DNA of 64,000 nucleotides from Podarcis erhardii (lineage: Eukaryota). Below the pieces are notes generated by a model that had not been told where the DNA came from, did not search any database, and worked only from the letters and a program-made list of their open reading frames with translations. How positions within the stretch are numbered: the stretch's first letter is position 1; every line of letters starts with the position of its first letter. The stretch lies in the NCBI GenBank assembly GCA_964252035.1, contig OZ176207.1; one strand, 5' to 3'. Below are positions 11,271-64,000 of this stretch, piece after piece. The translations under genes and the position numbers were made by a program.

Positions 11271-12228
11271 TGTGGGGTGCCACAGGGTTCTGTCTTGGGC
11301 CCGGTCTTATTCAACATCTTTATCAACGACTTGGATGATGGACTCAAGGGCATCCTGATCAAATTTGCAGATGACACCAAACTGGGAGGGGTGGCTAACA
11401 CCCCAGAGGACAGGATCACACTTCAAAATGACCTTGACAGATTAGAGAACTGGGCCAAAACAAACAAGATGAATTTTAACAGGGAGAAATGTAAAGTATT
11501 GCACTTGGGCAAAAAAAATGAGAGGCACAAATACAAGATGGGTGACACCTGGCTTGAGAGCAGTACATGTGAAAAGGATCTAGGAGTCTTGGTTGACCAC
11601 AAACTTGACATGAGCCAACAGTGTGACGCGGCAGCTAAAAAAGCCAATGCAATTCTGGGCTGCATCAATAGGAGTATAGCATCTAGATCAAGGGAAGTAA
11701 TAGTGCCACTGTATTCTGCTCTGGTCAGACCTCACCAGTTCTGGGCACCACAGTTCAAGAAGGACACTGACAAACTGGAACGTGTCCAGAGGAGGGCAAG
11801 CTAAATGGTCAAAGGCCTGGAAACGATGCCTTATGAGGAACGGCTAAGGGAGCTGGGCATGTTTAGCCTGGAGAAGAGGAGGTTAAGGGGTGATATGATA
11901 GCCATGTTCAAATATATAAAAGGATGTCACATAGAGGAGGGAGAAAGGTTGTTTTCTGCTGCTCCAGAGAAGCGGACACGGAGCAATGGATCCAAACTAC
12001 AAGAAAGAAGATTCCACCTAAACATTAGGAAGAACTTCCTGACAGTAAGAGCTGTTCGACAGTGGAATTTGCTGCCAAGGAGTGTGGTGGAGTCTCCTTC
12101 TTTGGAGGTCTTTAAGCAGAGGCTTGACAACCATATGTCAGGAGTGCTCTGATGGTGTTTCCTGCTTGGCAGGGGGTTGGACTCGATGGCCCTTGTGGTC
12201 TCTTCCAACTCTATGATTCTATGATTCT
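11271..12228 (+). mobile_element. 5'-truncated CR1 LINE (RT end of ORF2 plus 3' UTR)
   Basis: [18 protein letters not shown]...[10 protein letters not shown] reverse-transcriptase motifs. In-frame TAA at 11802-11804 and a missing LEYCV segment. Ends in the CR1 tail ctatgattctatgattct. Confidence 0.95.
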
Positions 12229-25544: not shown

Positions 25545-26108
25545 NNNNNNNNNNNNNNNNNNNNNNNNNNNNNNNNNNNNNNNNNNNNNNNNNNNNNNNN
25601 NNNNNNNNNNNNNNNNNNNNNNNNNNNNNNNNNNNNNNNNNNNNNNNNNNNNNNNNNNNNNNNNNNNNNNNNNNNNNNNNNNNNNNNNNNNNNNNNNNNN
25701 NNNNNNNNNNNNNNCTCACTCACACAGTCTTCAACCTTAGGTATTTTCATTTAATTCNNNNNNNNNNNNNNNNNNNNNNNNNNNNNNNNNNNNNNNNNNN
25801 NNNNNNNNNNNNNNNNNNNNNNNNNNNNNNNNNNNNNNNNNNNNNNNNNNNNNNNNNNNNNNNNNNNNNNNNNNNNNNNNNNNNNNNNNNNNNNNNNNNN
25901 NNNNNNNNNNNNNNNNNNNNNNNNNNNNNNNNNNNNNNNNNNNNNNNNNNNNNNNNNNNNNNNNNNNNNNNNNNNNNNNNNNNNNNNNNNNNNNNNNNNN
26001 NNNNNNNNNNNNNNNNNNNNNNNNNNNNNNNNNNNNNNNNNNNNNNNNNNNNNNNNNNNNNNNNNNNNNNNNNNNNNNNNNNNNNNNNNNNNNNNNNNNN
26101 NNNNNNNN
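25545..26108. other. Two assembly gaps (25545-25714 and 25758-26108)
   Basis: Runs of N. Confidence 0.99.
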
Positions 26109-29919: not shown

Positions 29920-30132
29920 AGCTTCCTTTTGGTTATTGCCATTTCCATGACTGCATTTTATTCTTACAACCTAATAGCCAAGAACCTCCTGTGTCCATGA
30001 TGAAGCATACTTTAAGGCAGATTTTAGATATAGGATGCCAATACAATTACTTTTTTTAATTTTTTTTTAAAAAACCACTGACTGGAACAAGACTGTTAGG
30101 AGACCAAGAAGCTTAATGATTATTTCCTTTAC

Positions 30133-30258
30133 CTTACAGGTCATCGTACGATGCTGAGCAATTACAGTTAGTTTCTCCAGAAGCCCTCTTAATCTCTCTT
30201 GTGTAGCATGGGAGATCAAGTTCAGAACATCTGAATTAACTTCCGTAATGTCATGGCT
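30133..30258 (-). CDS. TAF4B: TAF4B exon 11, visible part (SHDITEVNSDVLNLISHATQERLRGLLEKLTVIAQHRTMTCK), histone fold
   Basis: Histone-fold motif ISHATQERLRGLLEKL. Donor AAG|GTAAAG at 30132. The acceptor and about 5 nt are hidden in the N run 30259-30390. Confidence 0.93.
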
Positions 30259-30390
30259 NNNNNNNNNNNNNNNNNNNNNNNNNNNNNNNNNNNNNNNNNN
30301 NNNNNNNNNNNNNNNNNNNNNNNNNNNNNNNNNNNNNNNNNNNNNNNNNNNNNNNNNNNNNNNNNNNNNNNNNNNNNNNNNNNNNNNNNN
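30259..30390. other. Assembly gap covering the TAF4B exon 11 acceptor
   Basis: Run of 132 N directly abutting coding sequence. Confidence 0.99.
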
Positions 30391-42535: not shown

Positions 42536-43288
42536 AGGTTTCCTGCTCTCCTTATCAAACAGAAAATAACTGCACGGTAACTTTAACATCTCTTTCAGTT
42601 GGTAGATCAGGGAGAAAAGGGATGTCCAACAACAGTACCTATGGTGACTTCAAATGAGACAGACTTAGCAGTGGGGAGCTGAGTCAACCATCACCATTTA
42701 ACATTTGTACAGCCCTTGAACATTCAAAGTATGTAACATAGTCTTTAATCCGTACAATAACCCAGTAAAGTAGACCACATCCCCCCCCCCCAATCTGTAT
42801 TATGGGAATGAGGCCAAGATATAATGGTCTGTCTACGGTGAAGTACACAGAATGGGTGAACTGTGCAAACACACACGCAGTTCAAGTATTCATGCTCAGT
42901 AAAGTTCTGGTATTGGAATGCTTAGTTTACATTGTCAAATACCTAGAAAGCTGCTCTGTTTAGTATCTGCCAGAGTTTTATTCATGGAGATGGGTGCTAA
43001 ACATTCCTGATTCTTTGAGTGGACTACTATCAGACAGATATATTCCTCAATGTTGCTTAGTACTCACATATCTCCATACTGCCCCTTTCCTCGTATATTA
43101 TTAACCTTTTACAATGGACATCTCAGGTGTCAAGTTATGCAAGGTACATAAGGGGCAAATGAACAAGTGCCATTTTAATTATATGCTGATAAACTGCCTT
43201 TGAATTGCTGGCTCGGCTGAACTGCTAAGGTTAGAAAACTTCAGAGCTTTACAGATCAAGAGCAAGATAAACTTATCAGCTACTTTAC

Positions 43289-43942
43289 CTTTACAGCCTG
43301 TGTCTGAGCTGAATGGGAAAGGACAGAACTGGGATGGACAACTTTGATCGTGATTGGTTTCCCAGCAACTGGCATTATGGATTGGAGAGACGCGGTCACT
43401 GCTGTTGTAGCAGCTGGTGCAGCAGTAGTCAAGGTTGGCTTCAGAGCTTGTAGAGATGTTGGTGCAGCAGAAGATGGTGGCTTTACAGAACTAGGAGCAG
43501 TAAATGCAGGTGATGACGACATTACAGGGGTATGGACTGGCTTCACAACCTGGAGAGAAGTGGTACCAGTTGCCACCATTGCAGTGGAGAAGACTGGATG
43601 TACAGCTCTCACAGTAGTTGGTTTAGTGGAGGGAACGGGACTGGCACCTTGAAGGGAGAGTGTCCCTGACAAAACAGGCGTGGTCTGAACAAGCTGAAGA
43701 GAACCAGATCCTCTTGTCACTCCTGATGTACAGAGGACTGGGCCTGAAGTCTGTTGGGAGGGTATCCCCGTCGGAATTTTAAGAGAGGTCACAGTCACAG
43801 GAGTGCTGGCAGCAGGTACCGAAGAAGCGGATGATGCTGTGCTACAAATAGGAGGAGCTGTTTGTGGTCCTGATTGTTGAAGACACTGCCGTATAAAGGC
43901 CTGCGCGTCAGGCATTAATTGCCGTAAGGCAAGCATACTTTT
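43289..43942 (-). CDS. TAF4B: TAF4B exon 7 (KSMLALRQLMPDAQAFIRQCLQQ...QTQAVK), long S/T/P/A-rich exon
   Basis: ORF track 43280..43936. Acceptor ccttgcgtag|AAA, donor AAG|GTAAAG. 654 nt. The N-terminus completes TAFH. Confidence 0.93.
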
Positions 43943-54100: not shown

Positions 54101-56212
54101 ATTTTAAGATGTTACAATTCACAGACTTTAGACTTGAGGGGGGAAATTAAGGTGTCAAAAACTGTTAAATACTCATTTTAGCATGCTAGAATACCTGTAT
54201 GCATAAGTAATTGTGTTTTCTTGGGAACAGTCATAAGAAATTATGACTTTGGTTGCACATTTTACTAGCATTATTATTCATTCTAGCTGCCTAGCTCAGC
54301 ATGTATTTTTTTCATGCAGCCAATCCCATGAAACAATGAATTTCTAAAACTGAAAACATTATGTAGAAAAATATGGTAGCAATATTTTTCCCAGCAAATT
54401 CTCCCTATCACTGATGCCTTCGGTAATGCTCAGATGTTGTCAGTGAAGACACACTGCAGGTTGCCTTGATGTAACAAGTCATCCTTAACACAGCTAGCAG
54501 CATGGACAAACAGCAACAATTAATACTTGGATAATATGGTAAGGTACATTTTTCAACTTGTTACTTGCTCTGGGCCTGCAGCCACTCTGTCAGTCAATGG
54601 CACTCATGGCAAGTAATGTTTGTTGTGGCAAAGTTTGTGTGTGACCAACAATAGCTCTGCCACCACTATGCAGGAGTTTTTTCTGCCACTAGTGTTAAAA
54701 TGTATATGAAACAAATGAGGAGGAAATAAGCTGCAGCTGCTCTGGAGTCTACCAACCTGTGACCTTCCTTCAACAGATACATTGGCACAGATTCAAAATT
54801 AGGGCAGGAAAATCAGTGCATTGCCACGTTTCCTCAAAAAGACAAGCAGCACCATGAGGTATAGATAACTACCAACTCCAAGGTCACCCACACTCAGTTT
54901 GAACTGCAGGATCTCCTAGGATGATCACTCCCTTTCATGCATACCAAGGGAGCAATGAATAAGACTGAAACTTGTCAAGTTGCTCCTGATTTCATGACAT
55001 ATGTTGTTGGTGACAAGAAGAGCAATGTCTGAACAGGCCCCTGCAGTGGCACTCCTGCCAGGGGTGCTAATTAGATAACTATTTTCGTATTGTCACATTT
55101 GCTACACAGAAATTCTGCCATACCAAAGTCTAACAGCTAATATTTAAGTTTGTTCCAACTCCTAATATTCTCTCATTTTAACACCTGCCACCTGCACCTG
55201 TCAAGTAATGAAGAAGTCTGGGTAAATGAGAGTAATATCAATTTCTCAAAAAGGTAGAACTTTAATTAGAAAAATATGATACCAATTCAAAGCTGATGCT
55301 AGCGTCAAATCACATTTTAATAGCACAAGATATCAAAACTTCGACATTAAAAGTTTGGGTGTCAAAACATTTTGAAAAACTTTTGCAAGTATATTACATC
55401 TTTGCAAGCAGGCAGGGAGAAGAGAAGGAAACTAAGCCTACCTCAGGCAGGCAAAAAAGTTCATGTCAGTTTATTATATGTGGCACAAGCATAACTTAGA
55501 TGAGCAATTTAGCAACAGTTCAGTGGAATCATTTCACGCAAATATGCAGTTGTGTGAGTGCACTGGGAACTTTTAAGTCACTGATCTGCGATTAGCAAGT
55601 GAAACTTTAAAGGGCTTACAATACTAACTTTCTCCCTTTACTTCTATGATAGTCTATGTCACACTTCTAGAACATAAAAAAGTTCACTTAATATTGAGTC
55701 AGTGTTTCCATATAAAGACTTAATGCTGTGAACCATACAGTACAGATACTGTAGATGGGTTGCTGGAAACATTTTTTTTAAAGTCCTATCTGATTTTCCC
55801 AAGGAATCTGCATTGAATGCGGGGGGAGGGGGAGGGAGGCAGAGATACAGGCTGGCATTTTGGTGCCAACAACATTCAGTGGGCAGGTGCTGCGAAAGAT
55901 CGGAAGGGGTGATGAAGGCTACTCCATCCCCACAATAAACACCATTTAACTTGCTTAGGAGTTGTCCTCCGCCCCCGCCCCCCCCCCATAGCAGAAATTG
56001 AACCTGGGACCGTCTGCATGAGAATCAGTTCTTTGCCACGAAGCAATCGGCCCAGCTCTCATGTTTAGAAGGCACATCCCACCACGATGCCCACAACTCG
56101 CCACTAGGTCCCTGATGACTTGACCCGTTAGCTGAAAACAAAACAAAACTTGGCGGCGGCGCCTGGCCTCATCCTACAGGAGCGCTGCCAGGAAAGGGAG
56201 AAGGCAACTCAC

Positions 56213-56582
56213 CCGGCGGGATCTGGAAGTTGGCAGGTAGCTGTATCGTCACCGTCTGCGGGGCTTTGGGGGCTCCGGGCTGAGGGGCCGGCAGCCTGGT
56301 CCCCGCGCCGGGCGTCTGGGGGAGCTGCAGAGCCGGAGGCGCCCCTTTGGGAGCGGGCGCCGCTCGGGGCTGCTGGGCGACGGGAGGAGGGACTCTGCTG
56401 AGGGAAACTTCGGCGTTCAAGGCGGGCGGCGCCGCGCTGTGGGCGCGCAGCGCAGCCGGGGCCTCGCGGAGCCCCCCGGTCCCATTCAAGGCGGCGGCGG
56501 CGGGGCCGGCCGCCAAGGCAGCGAGCTCCGGAGACCCGGAGGGCAGGACCCTCCCCGGCGCGGCTGCTCCCGGCGTCGTCAT
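56213..56582 (-). CDS. TAF4B: TAF4B coding exon 1 (MTTPGAAAPG...TRLPAPQPGAPKAPQTVTIQLPANFQIPP-G)
   Basis: ATG at 56582-56580 inside the CpG island. The end matches the TAF4-family motif RLPAPQ...TIQLPANFQ.PPG. Donor G|GTGAGT at 56212, phase 1, 370 nt. The start-codon choice is inferred (weak Kozak, tccATGa). Confidence 0.85.
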
Positions 56583-56647
56583 GGAGGAGAGGGCGCGCGG
56601 CGGAAAGTGCGGGAGCCTGGCGGAGACTCCGAGCGAGTCCACAGCAT
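56579..56647 (-). other. TAF4B leader uORF2 (22 aa) whose TGA overlaps the main ATG (ATGA)
   Basis: ATG CTG TGG ACT ... CCT CCA TGA. The stop occupies 56581-56579, overlapping the main ATG at 56582-56580. Confidence 0.45.
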
Positions 56648-56780
56648 AGCAGCCTCCGAGGGGGCCCAGGAGCCGGCGAAGCTGCCGCCGCTGCGGCAAA
56701 AGCAGCGGCAGCGGCGGCGGCAGAGTCCCCAGCGAAACAAGCTGCCTCAGAGGCTGCACCGCTCGCGGACCAAGCAAGAG

Positions 56781-56807
56781 TTAGGGGCACGGCTGCAGAA
56801 AACACAT
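56781..56807 (-). other. TAF4B leader uORF1 (MCFLQPCP*)
   Basis: accATG TGT TTT CTG CAG CCG TGC CCC TAA, in frame with the main ORF. Lies in the leader only if the TSS is upstream of 56807. Confidence 0.45.
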
Positions 56808-57002
56808 GGTCCCGCAGCCGCTGCCGGCTTCTCCTCCTCAGAGGCGCGCACGTGTAGCGCCAGGCACTTCTCGCCTGGAGCAGAAGGCTCCAGCCAGGAC
56901 AGGGGCGCACGCGAGCCGGCAACGCCCTACGGAGCCCCGCGCCGCCTCCCAGACCCGCCCCGAGGAACAGCCCCCAAGCGGCTCCGCTCTCCGTTAGCCA
57001 TG

Positions 57003-57105
57003 TTTATATAGCCACGCGGGGCTCCCCGGCGCACGCGCCCTGGCTCTCCTGGCGGCTCATTGGCTACACCGGGCAACCTCGGCTGGGCGGCGTCGCGCGG
57101 CGTCA
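57003..57105 (-). promoter_or_regulatory. TATA box (TATATAAA, 57010-57003), CCAAT box (57063-57059) and CGTCA half-CRE (57101-57105)
   Basis: Motifs read directly. CCAAT then TATA are correctly ordered for a minus-strand TSS near 56975 (inferred). Confidence 0.55.
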
Positions 57106-58857
57106 CGCAGAGAGCACGGCCCCCCGCGCCGCTGAAGAACGCCGCAGGCGGAAAGTTATTGGGGAAATCGAATGCACTTGGTGGTTTTCGCTCTCTCTTA
57201 CACCCAAACACCCTCACTCACCGAAGGCGCACGTTGCATCGAAGAAGTAAGTGGAGTTGGTAATGCCAACAGAATGCCTATAATTTAGGGATTTCTACTT
57301 TTAAAATGTTTGCTTTGGGGTGGTGTTTTCTTTAAATTGATATTACTTGGGGAGTCAGCGCAGTGCACATCCGCAGGCACCCCTGCAGCCTTGTAAATAA
57401 GTTACTAGCATGCAAAGAGGAAGAAGCTTTTTACTAGTAATGGAGGAGTGAATAACACAGCAGCGTGCTGTTTTTCCGTAAAGAGTGCAGAGGAAGGAAA
57501 TGGAGCTCTAACCTTCCACCACCCACCTGCTCACTTTTCTGCATAAAATTTCCTGCACTGAGCTGCATGCACTTCCTTGTTAGTTACGGCTTCCAGGCTA
57601 GTGGTTCAATACAAGTCTACTGTGTTAGGGCTACTCTTAACAAAGTAGTTAGTGGTTTTCAATTTTTGTCATGAGGCTTACAAAATAAGCAGGGTGCATC
57701 CTTTTGAGGACAGGCAGGCTGTTCTGCTTTCTTACAGACATTTATAGATTAATGAAACGATCCTTAATTGTGCTCATTTTGCTTTTTAAAAAAACATAAG
57801 CATGGATGTGGTTTTGAGAGAGCGAAATGACTCTCAGGCAGTGCAATTTTATGCCACCTACTACTGAACTCTCTTGTGATGCCTGTGTTAATAATCACAC
57901 TGACATGTGATTTTTACAGGATTTTTACTTATTTATTTTGGTCAATAGCCATTCTTGTTGCTCCTCAACAAACTGCTGCTGGACCACTGAATATATTTTC
58001 AACTGCAGCTTTTTACACTTACCTAGGAGGGAGTCTTAGTTATCTCAGTGGGACTTACTTCCCCACAAATTATGCCCAAAGTATCTTACAGCATTTCACA
58101 TTTCAAAATAAAGCTTAGAAACATTTAGAAATAATGTTAATTTAGCAAATAAATACAAAAAATAAATCCATACAATGCTGCTTCTTCTTTGGCAATCACT
58201 CGTCGCCGAGTAAACTATATAAATATGGTAAGCTAGTTTAACAGTTTCAAATTAAACAGAAGAGAGAATAATGCCTAATTCAGAATAATCCCTAATAAGA
58301 AAGTAGATCACATGTTGCAGACAATGCACTTGTATCCAATAGTGTGGATCTGAGACTTCATCTTTAAACATCCAGAATCTCCACCCCATCTCTCACCTGG
58401 CTTTCACCCAGAGGGGCCTTATGCTCACCATTATTGTGGGCTCTTGCCCACAGTAAAGGAACCAATAACTTTCCTTCCACACTCCCCCATCAATAAAGGT
58501 ATGTTCTTCCAGTCTGGAAATCATAAACAAAGTTTCAGTGTTGTGATGAGCCCCAAAGTAGCGGACCTTTTAGCCTTCCTCAAGTTAAAAGATAAGGGTA
58601 ACAATGGAGAAACATGATTTAAAGGACAGGTTTTACAAAGAAAAATAAGCAGTTTCAACATTACTAGTTGAAACTCCCATTAAGCATTTTAGAACATTGC
58701 CAATTCTGTGTCTGTGGTTCATGCTGTTCATCATCTTATGCAGACCCAGTGTGTTAGTAATTTAATCCTTAAATATTTCCTACTACTATAATTGGTTAAC
58801 ACAATCTAGCATTTTTCTGCTTATCTGCAGCTGCCAGTTCCTAATCAACAAGTAGAA

Positions 58858-58875
58858 ATGGTGGCGTGGGCTTGA
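58858..58875 (+). other. Short strong-Kozak uORF (MVAWA*) upstream of the MCTS1 retrocopy
   Basis: gaaATGG TG GCG TGG GCT TGA, with G at -3 and G at +4. Ends 132 nt before the main ATG. Confidence 0.45.
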
Positions 58876-58901
58876 GAGTGGGAACAGGGCCTGCGTGGGA
58901 G

Positions 58902-58949
58902 TTGCTGCTGCTGCTGCTGCTGCTGCTGTTGCTGCTGCTGTTGCTGCTG
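58902..58949 (+). repeat. Interrupted CTG repeat: TTG(CTG)8 TTG(CTG)3 TTG(CTG)2
   Basis: Direct read; lies in the leader of the MCTS1 retrocopy. Confidence 0.95.
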
Positions 58950-59007
58950 TTAGTCGCTGGCCTTCCAGCCCCTCGGTTCTTAGGGCTCTCGCGGAAACCC
59001 CGGCAAG

Positions 59008-59553
59008 ATGTTCAAAAAATTTGATGGAAAGGAGAATGTGTCCAACTGCATCCAACTAAAAACGTCAGTTATTAAAGGCATTAAGAACCAGCTGATAGAC
59101 CAGTTTCCTGGGATCGAACCATGGCTAAACCAAATTATGCCAAAGAAAGACCCTGTGAAGATAGTACGTTGTCATGAACATATAGAAATCCTCACAGTAA
59201 ATGGAGAATTGTTGTTCTTCAGGCAAAGGGAAGGACCATTTTATCCCACGCTCAGGTTACTTCATAAATATCCATTCATTCTACCACATCAACAAGTTGA
59301 TAAAGGAGCCATTAAATTTGTACTTAGTGGAGCAAATATCATGTGCCCTGGTCTGACGTCTCCAGGAGCTAAACTTTATCCTGCTGCTGCTGATACAATC
59401 ATGGCAATAATGGCCGAAGGAAAGCAACATGCCCTGTGTGTTGGAGTCATGAAGATGTCGACAGGGGATATTGAGAAGGTCAACAAAGGAATTGGCATTG
59501 AGAATATCCACTATTTAAATGATGGTCTCTGGCATATGAAGACATATAAGTGA
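59008..59553 (+). CDS. MCTS1: Intronless MCTS1 retrocopy with intact ORF (malignant T-cell-amplified sequence 1, PUA-domain translation reinitiation/40S recycling factor), 181 aa
   Basis: [29 protein letters not shown]...[24 protein letters not shown]...[18 protein letters not shown] is full-length MCTS1, with no introns, stops or frameshifts. Good Kozak (aagATG). Vertebrate MCTS1 is multi-exon, so this is a retroposed copy. Confidence 0.95.
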
Positions 59554-59990
59554 AGAAGCAGGAAGAATCCATTGGATTTCAGCTGGGCCTGTTTTTAATT
59601 CTTCTTTTAAAATGTGTGGCTAAATGTAAACTTTGTGGTGATGCTAAATAAATCAAATGAATGCTGAGGGAAAAACAAGTAGAAATGGCATGTAAATAAA
59701 AGTTTGCTTCATCAAACAACTTTAGTAATTCTTCAAAAGAATTGCTGTTATTGTGTTCAGATGATATGCTGTTTAATTTATATTCTCCTGCTGAATTGAA
59801 ATTCAGTATATTGTTTTCCATCTGTCTGAAGTGCTCAAGACTGGTGAATTCCCTTTCAACAATATGAGTCCCTTGGTCTGAGCTACTCAGGAAAAGCAAT
59901 TACAATATAATTGTAGGTGTTTCCCCCCCCCCCGCCCTCTTCGCTTGTGCAGTGCACCTAAATTCTTTTTAATGAGAAAAAAACAAAACA
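59554..59990 (+). other. Probable 3' UTR of the MCTS1 retrocopy with AATAAA at 59647 and 59695 and an A-rich remnant at ~59976-59990
   Basis: The two hexamers are read directly. The A-rich tract gaaaaaaacaaaaca could be a decayed poly(A) tail (inference). Confidence 0.45.
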
Positions 59991-60518
59991 TACAAGTTTT
60001 ATGCAGCTTTGGGACATCATGAACATGTCACAGTTACTATTCAATTATTGAAAATGGAATTGGAATCAAGCACCAAATATTGAGAAGTGTAAGTAAACCG
60101 TACCATGATCATTTTTTTAGGTTTGTGTAAGAAGCTTGGGTTTTACATGTTGCTTTGTCCAACAGAAATATAAAGGTTATAAGAAATAGGGACTCTTTTA
60201 AAATGCAAGCAATAAGCCAACCTGTAAGTAAATTGACAAATCCAGTTTAGTTGCTTTTGCTGTATGAATTTTTTATAAGCCTATCCATGCTCCTTAGAGA
60301 GTTTGAAAAATTATGACATCTATTTAATGGTGATTCCTAGGGAATATTCATGCAACTATTTTTTTGAAGATACACAGGCTTCATCTGGTCTTCGAGCCAC
60401 CCCCCCCCCCAAATCTACATCTCCTCCACCCCACACTTCATGGGGCTGCCTTTAAAGACAGTTCAGAAGCTTTTGCTGGTACAGAATGCAACAGCCCAGG
60501 GATTGGCAAGAGCCAAAT

Positions 60519-60656
60519 TGGGCATGGGGAACCTGTGGCTCTCCAGATCTTTCTGGGCTGCAGCTCTTGTCATCCGAGTCCATTGGTAATGAGGTCTGGG
60601 GCCAATGAGAGTTGGAGTCCAACAACATCTGATATGCCACAGGTTCCGCATTCTTG
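60519..60656. mobile_element. Older ~130-bp palindromic MITE family; degenerate copies also at ~908-1031, 16690-16810, 18382-18509, 20840-20965, 37030-37140, 51740-51866, 61371-61509
   Basis: Shared pattern ggggaacc...ctccagatg...ctcccatc...gatgggagttg...catctggagg...ggttcccc. Boundaries approximate. Confidence 0.6.
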
Positions 60657-60664
60657 GGCTAAAT

Positions 60665-61150
60665 GGTGCCTGCACTGATAACCTCAGAGCTTGATTACCA
60701 TAATGTTCTTTGTGTGGGGCTACCCATGTATTTCAGAGGGACGCGGGTGGCGCTGTGGGTTAAACCACAGAGCCTAGGGCTTGCTGATCAGAAGGTTGGT
60801 GGTTCGAATCCCCATGATGGGGTGAGCTCCCTTTGCTCAGTCACAGCTCCTGCCAACCTAGCAGTTCGAAAGCACGTCAAAGTGTAAGTAGATAAATAGG
60901 TACCACTCCGGTGGGAAGGTAAACGGCATTTCCGTGCACTGCTCTGGTTTGCCAGAAGCAGCGTAGTCATGCTGGCCACATGACCCAGAAGCTGTACGCT
61001 GGCTCCCTTGGCCAATAAAGCGAGATGAGCACCACAACCCCAGAGTCGGTCACGACTGGACCTAACAGTCCGGGTCCCTTTACCTACCCGTGTATTTCAA
61101 CCAGAAGCTTTAACTAGAGTGGAATGCAGCAGCCAGTCTGCTTACGGGAG
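60665..61150 (+). mobile_element. L2-type LINE fragment split by a Sauria SINE
   Basis: ALITSELDYHNVLCVGLP before the SINE; the ...gaatgcagcagccagtctgct (NAAA.LL) continuation follows it. Confidence 0.6.
60736..61084 (+). mobile_element. Sauria-type SINE inserted in an L2 fragment
   Basis: TSD tacccatgtatttca (60721-60735) / tacccgtgtatttca (61085-61099), one mismatch. Confidence 0.93.
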
Positions 61151-62639
61151 CAGATTTCTGGCAACAAGTTACCCCATTATATTATTGCTCTGTATTAAGG
61201 TTCTCCAAGACAACTGCCTTGCAACAGTCCCGTCCCCCCCACTTCTCCAGTACTGGACACAGCATGGATTGCTGTGGTAAATTTCTGTTTGATTCCTCTA
61301 AATCACCAGGCCCATACAAAATGAATGTGATCATGTCCAAAGTTTATAAGACTAAGGACGCCGGTGTGCAACAGCCTTTGCCAACCTCATGCCCTCCAGC
61401 AGTTTTTGAATTTTTTTTATCAGTCTCATCCTTTATAGCCTTGTTGGCTGAGGCTGATGGCAGCTGTAAGCTGTAAGCATCATGAGGGCAGCAGATTGAG
61501 GAAGGCTGTTGTGCACCAAGCAAAAATTATTAAATGAAACTTCTCATCATCTTTCCTCACCTTACTGCCATTAAGTTAGTATGCTTGTTCAGAGGATAGT
61601 AATACATTCTGAGGAAATATATATAATAAAATGGCCAATTGTATCTTTTATTAGGATATTTTGATCCTAAGAGCTCTCGGGGTGCAATCCTATATACACT
61701 TATCTTGGATTAAGGCCTGTTGAACTCAGCAGGGCTTCCTTCTGAGTAGATCCATGTAGGATTGTAGTGCACTTTACCTTGAGCTCAGTGGGAGTTACTT
61801 CCAAGTAAACGTGATTAGGATCAGACTGCACATTACGTACATCTATGGCCAGACTTGTCTCAGTTCAGAAGAACCAAAATTATTGACTGCATGAAGAAAA
61901 ACAAGCGAATTGACACAGAAGCTGTTGCTACTCACAGCTTGTATTAACAAAATAGTTTACATGCTTCAAGTGAGGAAACTGCTCCCCTCCCCTAAAAATT
62001 CTGTGCATGTGCCATATTTTTCCATTTAATTTTCTTATGCCTTGAGTATATCTTTCCCACTGTGGCAGATGCACAGAAGCAATCATGAGAGCTGCAGTAT
62101 GTTTTCCCTGAAATATTAATTGTAAAAACTATTCTTCAGAATTGTATGTTAACAAAACTGATTGTCACACTGTGGAAATTAGGATGGTAATTTCCCCCTA
62201 AATAATACACAAAATTATGTTTTCATATGCTTTCCCAGAACCCTTTCATACCCATAATGTTCTCAATATGGGGCTTCTTACAGTATATTATAAATTAGCA
62301 TCAATTACTATAGCTCACAGCATTGTCAGTCTAGAGACAGAGACAACAGAAGTCACATAACGTTGTACCACCAGATGCTAGGGGACACCTTGTGCACTTC
62401 ATGAATTTTCAATTGAAAGGCACAGTTGCCAGTTAGAATAATTTATATCAATTCTATACAGGTGTAGTTTGTTTAGCTCCTATTTAGCCAATCACTCATA
62501 ACCATAATAGCTGGTTTTGTTGCACCAAAGCAAATGCTTGGGTTTCCTGTTGTTGTTTTGCCACACTGTGAAACCTAATATACAACTGATACATGATTTG
62601 AGGTGGAGAAAGCAAGTAAATTTTATAGGGGTTATTGGC

Positions 62640-63274
62640 TGATTCCTAACTGGTCCCAAGACAGGAGCAAGCTAGCAGTAAATCACACCAAGAAAGTTGG
62701 AGTTAACTCTTTATTAGCAAAAACAGGATCTACACAGGAGTGTCAGACCTAATGAGCATAGCAACTCATTTCTGGCAGGACTTGCCCCCATGAAGCAGTT
62801 GCAGAGACTGCAAGTTCCCGCCTCCCCGCAGCTGCCTAAGTCCCCTCCTCTCCAGGGTTTTCCCCAAGCAATCTGACACAGCAACTGTGTGTAGCTAACA
62901 TCTCCTCCACCCTTTTCATGACTCTCCTGGTTCTGAGAGACATGGGGGGGGGCAGAAGAGGAACTTGTTGCAGCAGGAGGGGGAGACACTCATGCCTCTT
63001 CAACAGTTGGACTCTGCCTCTTGACCTCCCTCCTCTCCTGCTTCAGCTTCTGCCTCTGCTTCTGGCCTCCTCTCTGCCACAGGCTCCCCCAGCTCACTAA
63101 GCCCTGTTACCCCTTCAGCTTCTGACACCTCCTCCTCCCAGGCTTCTTCCTCTTCTCTCTCTGACCACCGATTGTCATCCCAGCACCAATCCCCGGACTC
63201 TGAACCTTCTTCCTTTTGGGGGTTCCCCAGCTGGTTCCTCCCACCATTCCTCTTTTTCCAACCAGTCCATGATA
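62640..63274 (-). mobile_element. Probable solo LTR (Gypsy-like)
   Basis: The minus strand starts TATCATGGACTGG (TG-like start mutated), has a purine-rich U3, then ctAATAAAgagttaact, and ends near ...atCA. No clear TSD; boundaries approximate. Confidence 0.6.
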
Positions 63275-64000
63275 TCTCATGATTCTTTGTGCCAGACCAT
63301 TCCAAAACACACTGAGTTGGATCCAGATTTGGGGTTGTATTCAACACTGTTGTTCCACTTGCATAATAGGCTTTTGCTTGCACGATGGAACTTCCCTGTC
63401 CTCTCTTCTGCAGCCCCCACCCGTTCACTCTCGAAATGTTTTTCCACGTGGTTGAGAAACCCTATAGAACAGTTTTGTGGGTCCTTGAGGAAAGGTGAGG
63501 AATAAGTCCCACTGCACAAGCAGAAGTCTTGAATAAGTAGAACAGCAGCATTGACTACAACTAGTGCTATTTTTCTAGAAAAAGAAGTGCTGGAACTCAC
63601 CATGAACATCTCCCTCATTCTCTTAGAATGGCAATGGCACCCACCTGAGAGTTGTCAGAACTGAGTTCTGGCTGAGAAGAAGCCCTTAGTTTATTGCGCT
63701 TGGTCACCATTGAAATCAGCTGGGCACATTAATAACTTAAGTCCCGGAGATTTCTGTCTCCTAGATTTGAACAGACATATCCATATGACTCCATGCTCTA
63801 GAAGAATGGCTGGAAAGGGAGGAGAGATGTAGAGAAATGCCAAAATAAAAGGCTATAGAAAGAATAATCACATTATCTGGACAAGTCGCTTCTTGTACAT
63901 AGTAAGACGCTATTTTAAAATGTCCCCAGGGTTGCAAGTGAGGATTGCTCATAGAAATAAACTCAGAAATCCAAGATTGGGAGCCAATGTGTACTCACAC

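Follow-up and report, generated by a model that had tools for sequence, protein, structure and literature searches.

An intact, intronless MCTS1 retrocopy upstream of TAF4B in Podarcis lizards

The TAF4B upstream region and the intact reading frame

The window (the whole stretch of 64 000 nt of Podarcis erhardii DNA that was analysed) carries TAF4B on its minus strand and, divergent from it, an intact open reading frame for MCTS1 on the plus strand (59008–59553). The features that define this neighbourhood are the following.

56000–57250 (approximate limits), strand not applicable: CpG island at the 5' end of TAF4B; GC content 0.56–0.79 and CpG observed/expected ratio 0.66–1.17 in 200-nt windows
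56202–56582, minus strand: coding part of TAF4B exon 1, start codon at 56582–56580; 75–84% identity to residues 1–135 of Podarcis and Lacerta TAF4B
43280–43936, minus strand: large internal TAF4B exon; 93–95% identity to residues ~348–563 of Podarcis TAF4B, with TAF4B as best cluster-representative match
30070–30258, minus strand: TAF4B exon with part of the TAF4 domain (Pfam PF05236 TAF4, E = 2.8e-14)
62000–62500, strand not applicable: sharply bounded conserved non-coding block; 3 variable columns per 500 across six lacertids

Pfam returned nothing in TAF4B exon 1 or in the large low-complexity exon, both of which were identified by comparison with lacertid TAF4B. Runs of N lie within the gene at 25545–25714, 25758–26108 and 30259–30390, one of them abutting the TAF4-domain exon, and one TAF4B intron contains two adjacent plus-strand ORFs of 175 and 115 amino acids (11277–12152) which by eye resemble LINE reverse transcriptase.

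The start codons of the two genes are 2.4 kb apart. The MCTS1 ATG is located ~1.76 kb from the edge of the CpG island, in agreement with an earlier note on this DNA which had described the pair as head-to-head and put this distance at ~1.8 kb. The inserted sequence itself (described below) starts ~1.6 kb past the island, i.e. at more than the spacing of a classical bidirectional pair, and its insertion site is ~2.3 kb upstream of the TAF4B start codon.

The retrocopy sits between the TAF4B promoter and the 62000–62500 block. This block contains no long ORF and has no Rfam match, and the windows on either side of it display 6–18 variable columns per 100 in the same six lacertids; it probably represents a conserved element with a regulatory role, upstream of TAF4B. 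Two shorter segments just downstream of the retrocopy (59800–59900 and 60000–60100) have 0–2 variable columns per 100 in the six species and are older than the insertion. An Rfam scan of positions 56000–64000 of the window found nothing. Conservation in the 1.5 kb upstream flank of the retrocopy is no higher than in the other flank, and therefore no constrained promoter is visible there. Since the retrocopy brought no promoter with it, local sequence, the TAF4B CpG-island region or the nearby conserved elements must serve, and it is plausible that the copy draws on the local regulatory landscape. The gonad-enriched function of TAF4B is established in mouse, not in lizards.

The reading frame comprises 181 codons plus stop, with neither a stop codon nor a frameshift inside. 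Its product matches the Pre-PUA (PF17832, E = 7.9e-28) and PUA (PF01472, E = 4e-15) domains of Pfam. The alignment with human MCTS1 (PDB 5ons_A; E = 3.6e-120) covers the entire protein and shows five differences (97% identity), so that the full-length, uninterrupted MCTS1 ORF that had been proposed is indeed there. The start codon has an A at −3, which bears out the Kozak context ascribed to it. CpG dinucleotides have been retained, as was also claimed (7 in the CDS, 14 in the whole insert). Counts of CpG retention are too low to be read as a proxy for germline hypomethylation. No record of the exact protein was found in a collection of gene calls. The P. erhardii copy carries four replacements (E7G, V132M, A152T and E153G). 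Residues L82, H86, K139–H141, L170 and W175 have been reported as contacts with DENR and F104 as a contact with tRNA (PMC6013234), and all of them are unaltered in the ORF. Because every known DENR- and tRNA-contact residue is kept, the predicted product is most likely a second MCTS1 protein pairing with DENR in 40S recycling and in reinitiation after upstream ORFs.

Anatomy, age and source of the insertion

The locus is a processed retrocopy of an MCTS1 mRNA. The segment 58862–59673 is collinear, from the 5'UTR to the cleavage site, with the spliced mRNA of the six-exon MCTS1 gene of P. raffonei. It is organized as follows.

58847–58861, strand not applicable: 5' target-site duplication (TSD), AACAAGTAGAAATGG; perfect (15/15) direct repeat with 59674–59688; Lacerta agilis and Zootoca vivipara have it once, at their empty site
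58862–59007, plus strand: 5'UTR-derived part (leader of parental exon 1); aligns upstream of the parental ATG of P. raffonei up to the TSD boundary
~58901–58956, plus strand: (GCT)n/GTT microsatellite of MCTS1 5'UTR origin, inside the 5'UTR-derived part
59008–59553, plus strand: intact MCTS1 CDS, 181 codons and stop; identified by its ORF, its domains and its 97% identity to human MCTS1
59018/59019, 59171/59172, 59269/59270, 59403/59404 and 59471/59472, plus strand: fused exon junctions in the CDS, placed from the GT-AG-bounded exons of P. raffonei and four snakes
59554–59667, plus strand: part derived from the 3'UTR, including the AATAAA poly(A) signal of the parent (59647–59652); homologous to parental exon 6 and 3'UTR
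59668–59673, plus strand: GGGAAA, the presumed sole remnant of the poly(A) tail; absent downstream of the parental cleavage site, common to the four Podarcis copies
59674–59688, strand not applicable: 3' TSD, AACAAGTAGAAATGG; direct repeat of 58847–58861
59695–59700, plus strand: second AATAAA, part of the older flank outside the retrocopy; found in the empty sites of L. agilis and Z. vivipara

Exon boundaries were defined in P. raffonei and in four colubroid snakes by requiring GT-AG introns and an open product of 181 codons. The insert lacks all five GT-AG introns that interrupt MCTS1 in P. raffonei and the snakes, and every junction is fused, as expected from the claim that the copy is intronless and as the comparison proposed in the earlier note was meant to reveal. 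Alignment with the P. raffonei parent begins at 58864 (two bases inside the TSD) and stops at 59667, which is ~15 nt past the AATAAA and is the point where the parental genomic sequence diverges; this 3' end of homology holds whether the comparison is made with P. raffonei, with Python or with the colubroid genes. The poly(A) tail seems to be almost gone, because GGGAAA is all that lies between the cleavage site and the 3' TSD, and in all four species the A/G run following the parental cleavage site amounts to at most ~9 bases, counting the start of the TSD. Two AATAAA signals had been attributed to the retrocopy: both exist, but the second one predates the insertion, being present in the L. 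agilis empty site. The microsatellite of the P. erhardii copy exceeds those of the other three Podarcis copies and of the P. raffonei parent by 33–36 nt.

The orthologous regions upstream of TAF4B were obtained from other lacertids by means of their TAF4B proteins. The same insertion with the same junctions was found in P. raffonei, P. muralis and P. lilfordi, whereas L. agilis and Z. vivipara have an uninterrupted empty site with one copy of the TSD sequence. The copy is thus specific to a lineage, as had been suggested, and the comparison across lacertids gives four filled sites in Podarcis and two empty ones outside. None of the four orthologous copies contains a stop, a frameshift or an indel in its CDS. 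In a maximum-likelihood tree of 3.9 kb of flanking sequence, the window groups with P. lilfordi (branches of 0.013 and 0.009) and P. raffonei with P. muralis; Lacerta and Zootoca fall outside. On these alignments the insertion is a single event, later than the Lacerta/Zootoca split and earlier than the Podarcis crown. Divergence between copy and parent in P. raffonei, which is ~6–10% in the UTRs and ~4.6% at silent sites, fits an insertion just before that crown.

A tRNA-derived SINE with a Sauria-like head (~350 bp) lies nearby at 60737–61085, bordered by a nearly perfect duplication of 13 nt (CCCATGTATTTCA / CCCGTGTATTTCA). All four Podarcis species have this element, which is missing from the site in Lacerta and Zootoca, and further copies of the same type occur in the TAF4B introns of L. 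agilis. P. raffonei and P. muralis alone have an additional SINE copy in their upstream flank.

The lists of MCTS1 protein-cluster members contained no lacertid parent, and the P. raffonei gene was located via its neighbour C1GALT1C1. It consists of six exons spread over 7 kb, adjoins C1GALT1C1 and lies on another chromosome than the copy; the multi-exon parent that had been anticipated does therefore exist, in a congener of P. erhardii. The snake MCTS1 genes are found between CUL4B and C1GALT1C1, and the order CUL4B-MCTS1-C1GALT1C1 is also the human Xq24 arrangement. The P. raffonei parent is carried by CM049769.1 (51,487,686 bp), and the copy by the chromosome of 89.6–92.5 Mb which bears TAF4B in P. 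raffonei, P. muralis and P. lilfordi. The Podarcis Z, including that of P. raffonei, measures ~51.4 Mb and has AR among its genes (PMC12860763); the counterparts of the lacertid Z are chicken 4p/human X and chicken 17, and KLHL13 is one of its validated Z-specific genes (PMC6534595). From the size of the chromosome and this known synteny, and not from a named chromosome record, the parent is probably Z-linked. Five of the seven CDS differences between the P. raffonei copy and its parent fall within positions 321–378 (58 nt, in exon 4). On the parental side, this cluster comprises a two-base codon change leading to A126S in an otherwise near-invariant protein; the cluster may reflect one event that changed several nucleotides, or else conversion from some other sequence.

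Selective constraint and alternative explanations

Four snake genes and the parental gene of P. raffonei were used to polarise the substitutions in the four copies. The codon analysis excluded Python bivittatus, in which exon 1 was not found, and one further locus, L007, whose match for exon 3 was ambiguous. The changes were distributed over the branches as listed here.

Stem of the window and P. lilfordi: 1 replacement (V132M), 2 silent
Window, terminal branch: 3 replacements (E7G, A152T, E153G), 1 silent
P. lilfordi: 0 replacements, 2 silent
P. raffonei: 0 replacements, 1 silent
P. muralis: 1 replacement (M135V), 4 silent
Ambiguous: 0 replacements, 1 silent
Total: 5 replacements, 11 silent

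Given the codon content of the gene, ~73% of the changes are expected to be replacements under neutrality. The observed deficit is significant for all branches together (5N:11S; binomial P = 5e-4), without the window terminal branch (2N:10S; P = 7e-5) and without both this branch and P. muralis (1N:6S; P = 0.002). Branch models were fitted with our own GY94-type implementation, not with PAML, and on low counts; they gave omega = 0.16 for the clade of copies against 0.008 for the parental genes. Both omega = 1 for the copies (LRT = 12.6, P = 0.0004) and equality with the parental value (P = 0.0002) were rejected, and the dN/dS check which had been proposed thus yields a value well below 1 across the orthologous copies. 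The flanks provide another yardstick: the Podarcis flank tree has a length of 0.099 substitutions per site, which corresponds to ~54 neutral substitutions in the 546 nt of the CDS, where only 16 were observed. The flank indel density predicts 5.5 indels in the CDS, where there is none (P = 0.004); the two UTRs of the copies have accumulated 4. Stop-creating changes (~2 expected neutrally) are likewise absent. The silent rate being near the flank rate, the deficit concerns replacement sites, as under selection on the protein. An omega of 0.16 instead of 1, the 16 substitutions in place of ~54 and the lack of indels all indicate that the copy is a selectively maintained retrogene, not a pseudogene left intact by chance.

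The account that we favour, with a probability of roughly 0.7, runs as follows. A full-length MCTS1 mRNA, originating from the multi-exon gene next to CUL4B and C1GALT1C1, most probably on the lacertid Z, was reverse-transcribed and inserted by a LINE-type (target-primed) mechanism at a probably autosomal site, ~2.3 kb upstream of the TAF4B start codon and divergent from this gene. At the time of the insertion Podarcis had already diverged from both Lacerta and Zootoca, and its living lineages were to split soon afterwards. The copy became fixed and has been retained as a protein-coding gene, whose product would act with DENR like mammalian MCTS2.

Several other explanations have to be weighed against this account. 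A young processed pseudogene whose reading frame happens to be intact in all species would agree with the perfect TSD of P. erhardii and with an insertion that carried no promotor along, and MCTS1 does yield other retrocopies, such as the degraded one in a DPH6 intron of the snake Ahaetulla prasina. However, the insertion is older than the split of the four Podarcis lineages (neutral tree length ~0.10), over which the CDS should have acquired ~54 substitutions, ~2 stops and ~5.5 indels instead of the 16, 0 and 0 that were counted, and the 5N:11S ratio rejects omega = 1 at P = 0.0004–0.0005; such a pseudogene is very improbable. That the retrocopy could be the sole MCTS1 gene of the lineage, relocated after loss of the intron-containing one, owes what little credit it has to the parent having been examined in the congener P. 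raffonei. P. raffonei possesses both the six-exon gene beside C1GALT1C1 and the retrocopy, and we regard this reading as having virtually no chance of being correct.

Constraint on the copy might also be mimicked by repeated gene conversion from the constrained parent. Two observations go in this direction: the clustering of parent-copy differences in P. raffonei (5/7 within CDS positions 321–378), and the P. muralis protein A0A670I9B7 (UniProt, P0056), which fits the parental exon structure yet carries the retrocopy-private V135. The latter is 164 amino acids long, its deletion being the one that splicing from the parental exon 2 donor to an alternative acceptor inside exon 3 would produce, and it is either a model projected onto the retrocopy or the result of gene conversion in P. 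muralis. It had been considered as proof of a spliced parent in P. muralis and was dropped for this use since it shares V135 with the retrocopy of that species. In P. raffonei, on the other hand, parent-copy divergence is near neutral at silent sites (~4.6%) as well as in the UTRs (~6–10%), which argues against homogenisation in this species, and none of the five parental changes in CDS 321–378 was passed to any copy. Furthermore, conversion erases silent and replacement differences alike and would not generate a silent-biased ratio unless tracts were frequent, and the ratio remains significant when P. muralis is set aside (1N:6S, P = 0.002). Conversion as the source of the apparent constraint is accordingly a very unlikely explanation, and selective maintenance of the copies remains the preferred one.

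The P. erhardii copy behaves differently from the others. On the window terminal branch omega is ~1.05, not significantly different from 1 (P = 0.97), and the two-ratio model is outperformed by one with three ratios (LRT = 4.49, P = 0.034). The genus-wide omega of 0.07 predicts 0.38 replacements on this branch, and the probability of at least three is 0.007. The residues concerned (E7, A152 and E/D153) show little or no variation among vertebrate MCTS1 proteins. These figures suggest a recent relaxation of constraint, and the copy may be decaying in this species. It is thus conceivable, though doubtful on balance, that a gene functional in ancestral Podarcis has lately become unconstrained in P. 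erhardii and is drifting towards a pseudogene, its ORF being still open for lack of time: the 3 replacements to 1 silent change of the terminal branch with the better fit of the three-ratio model, the excess over what omega = 0.07 allows, the position of the three replacements on (near-)invariant residues and the expansion by ~33 nt of the 5'UTR microsatellite, which is found solely in this species, are all in its favour. Yet this relaxation rests on four changes, Fisher's exact test, comparing the window terminal branch with the remainder of the tree, yields P = 0.063, the reported DENR and tRNA contacts are intact and neither a stop nor an indel has appeared; adaptive change, variants segregating in one individual or assembly error would account for the pattern equally well. 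We lean towards the P. erhardii copy being still functional.

Relation to other MCTS1 copies and significance

The closest parallel is mammalian MCTS2, which like the Podarcis copy is an intronless MCTS1 retrogene of 181 amino acids that has been kept coding. MCTS2 binds DENR and supports or rescues reinitiation in vitro (PMC11790910). Its origin involved a shift from a sex-linked to an autosomal location, and the same would be true of the Podarcis copy if its parent is Z-linked, which is probable; the lacertid Z and the therian X share an ancestral region, corresponding to chicken 4p (PMC6534595). The two insertions are independent, MCTS2 being inside H13/HM13 and the Podarcis copy upstream of TAF4B, and they differ in age and in sex-chromosome system (XY in one case, ZW in the other): the Podarcis copy is absent from Lacerta and Zootoca, and is much younger. 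Orthology with MCTS2 was rejected on the grounds of the different locus and of this absence, from which it follows that the insertion arose within lacertids. The rodent MCTS2 protein cluster also holds predictions fused with H13. With parental MCTS1 (TMA20 family) the Podarcis copy shares its length, the Pre-PUA and PUA domains and the residues contacting DENR and tRNA; it differs from it by the lack of introns, by another chromosome and regulatory setting, and by a constraint ~10–20 times weaker (omega 0.07–0.16 against 0.008).

Another retroposed MCTS1 mRNA is the 'MCTS1-A-like' gene of A. prasina, situated in a DPH6 intron (L001:9997-12233). Its product has 178 amino acids with many replacements, and the sequence is broken by a 1.5-kb insertion, in contrast to the Podarcis copy, which is uninterrupted in four species and has silent-biased changes. 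This separate, degraded retrocopy was discarded as an orthologue of the Podarcis one. The existing annotation treats its 1.5-kb insertion as an intron.

The copy had been thought to be undescribed. A full-text literature search returned papers dealing with mammalian MCTS2 or with the sex chromosomes of lacertids and none on a squamate MCTS1 retrogene, so that this statement holds for the publications searched; it does not hold for annotations, as the public gene sets of P. raffonei, P. muralis and P. lilfordi already have a 181-residue Pre-PUA/PUA gene called at the insertion. Mammals and flies have provided many functional retrogenes, whereas those of squamates are poorly documented. Two surveys of ZW taxa report that there is no general 'out of the Z' export (PMC3242482; bioRxiv 10.64898/2026.06.26.734816). 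The finding concerns a single gene which already exists as an unnamed gene model in public annotations.

A broader hypothesis would make MCTS1 a repeat 'escapee', an autosomal retrogene having been kept in the therian X lineage and, independently, in the lacertid Z lineage. The driver would be silencing of the parent or its halved dose in the heterogametic germline, and the Podarcis copy would owe germline expression to the TAF4B landscape, between the CpG-island promoter and the 500-bp element. We consider this extension unlikely as it stands.

Retention of a DENR-partnering retrogene, as in the favoured account, would make the Podarcis pair a natural replicate of MCTS1/MCTS2, with a parent that is probably on a Z homologous to the mammalian X. 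The strong constraint in three species, set against the neutral-looking copy of P. erhardii, offers a comparison of retention and loss within one genus. The pair could also serve to test the purpose of a second MCTS1 paralogue, be it dosage, germline silencing or a distinct role with DENR.
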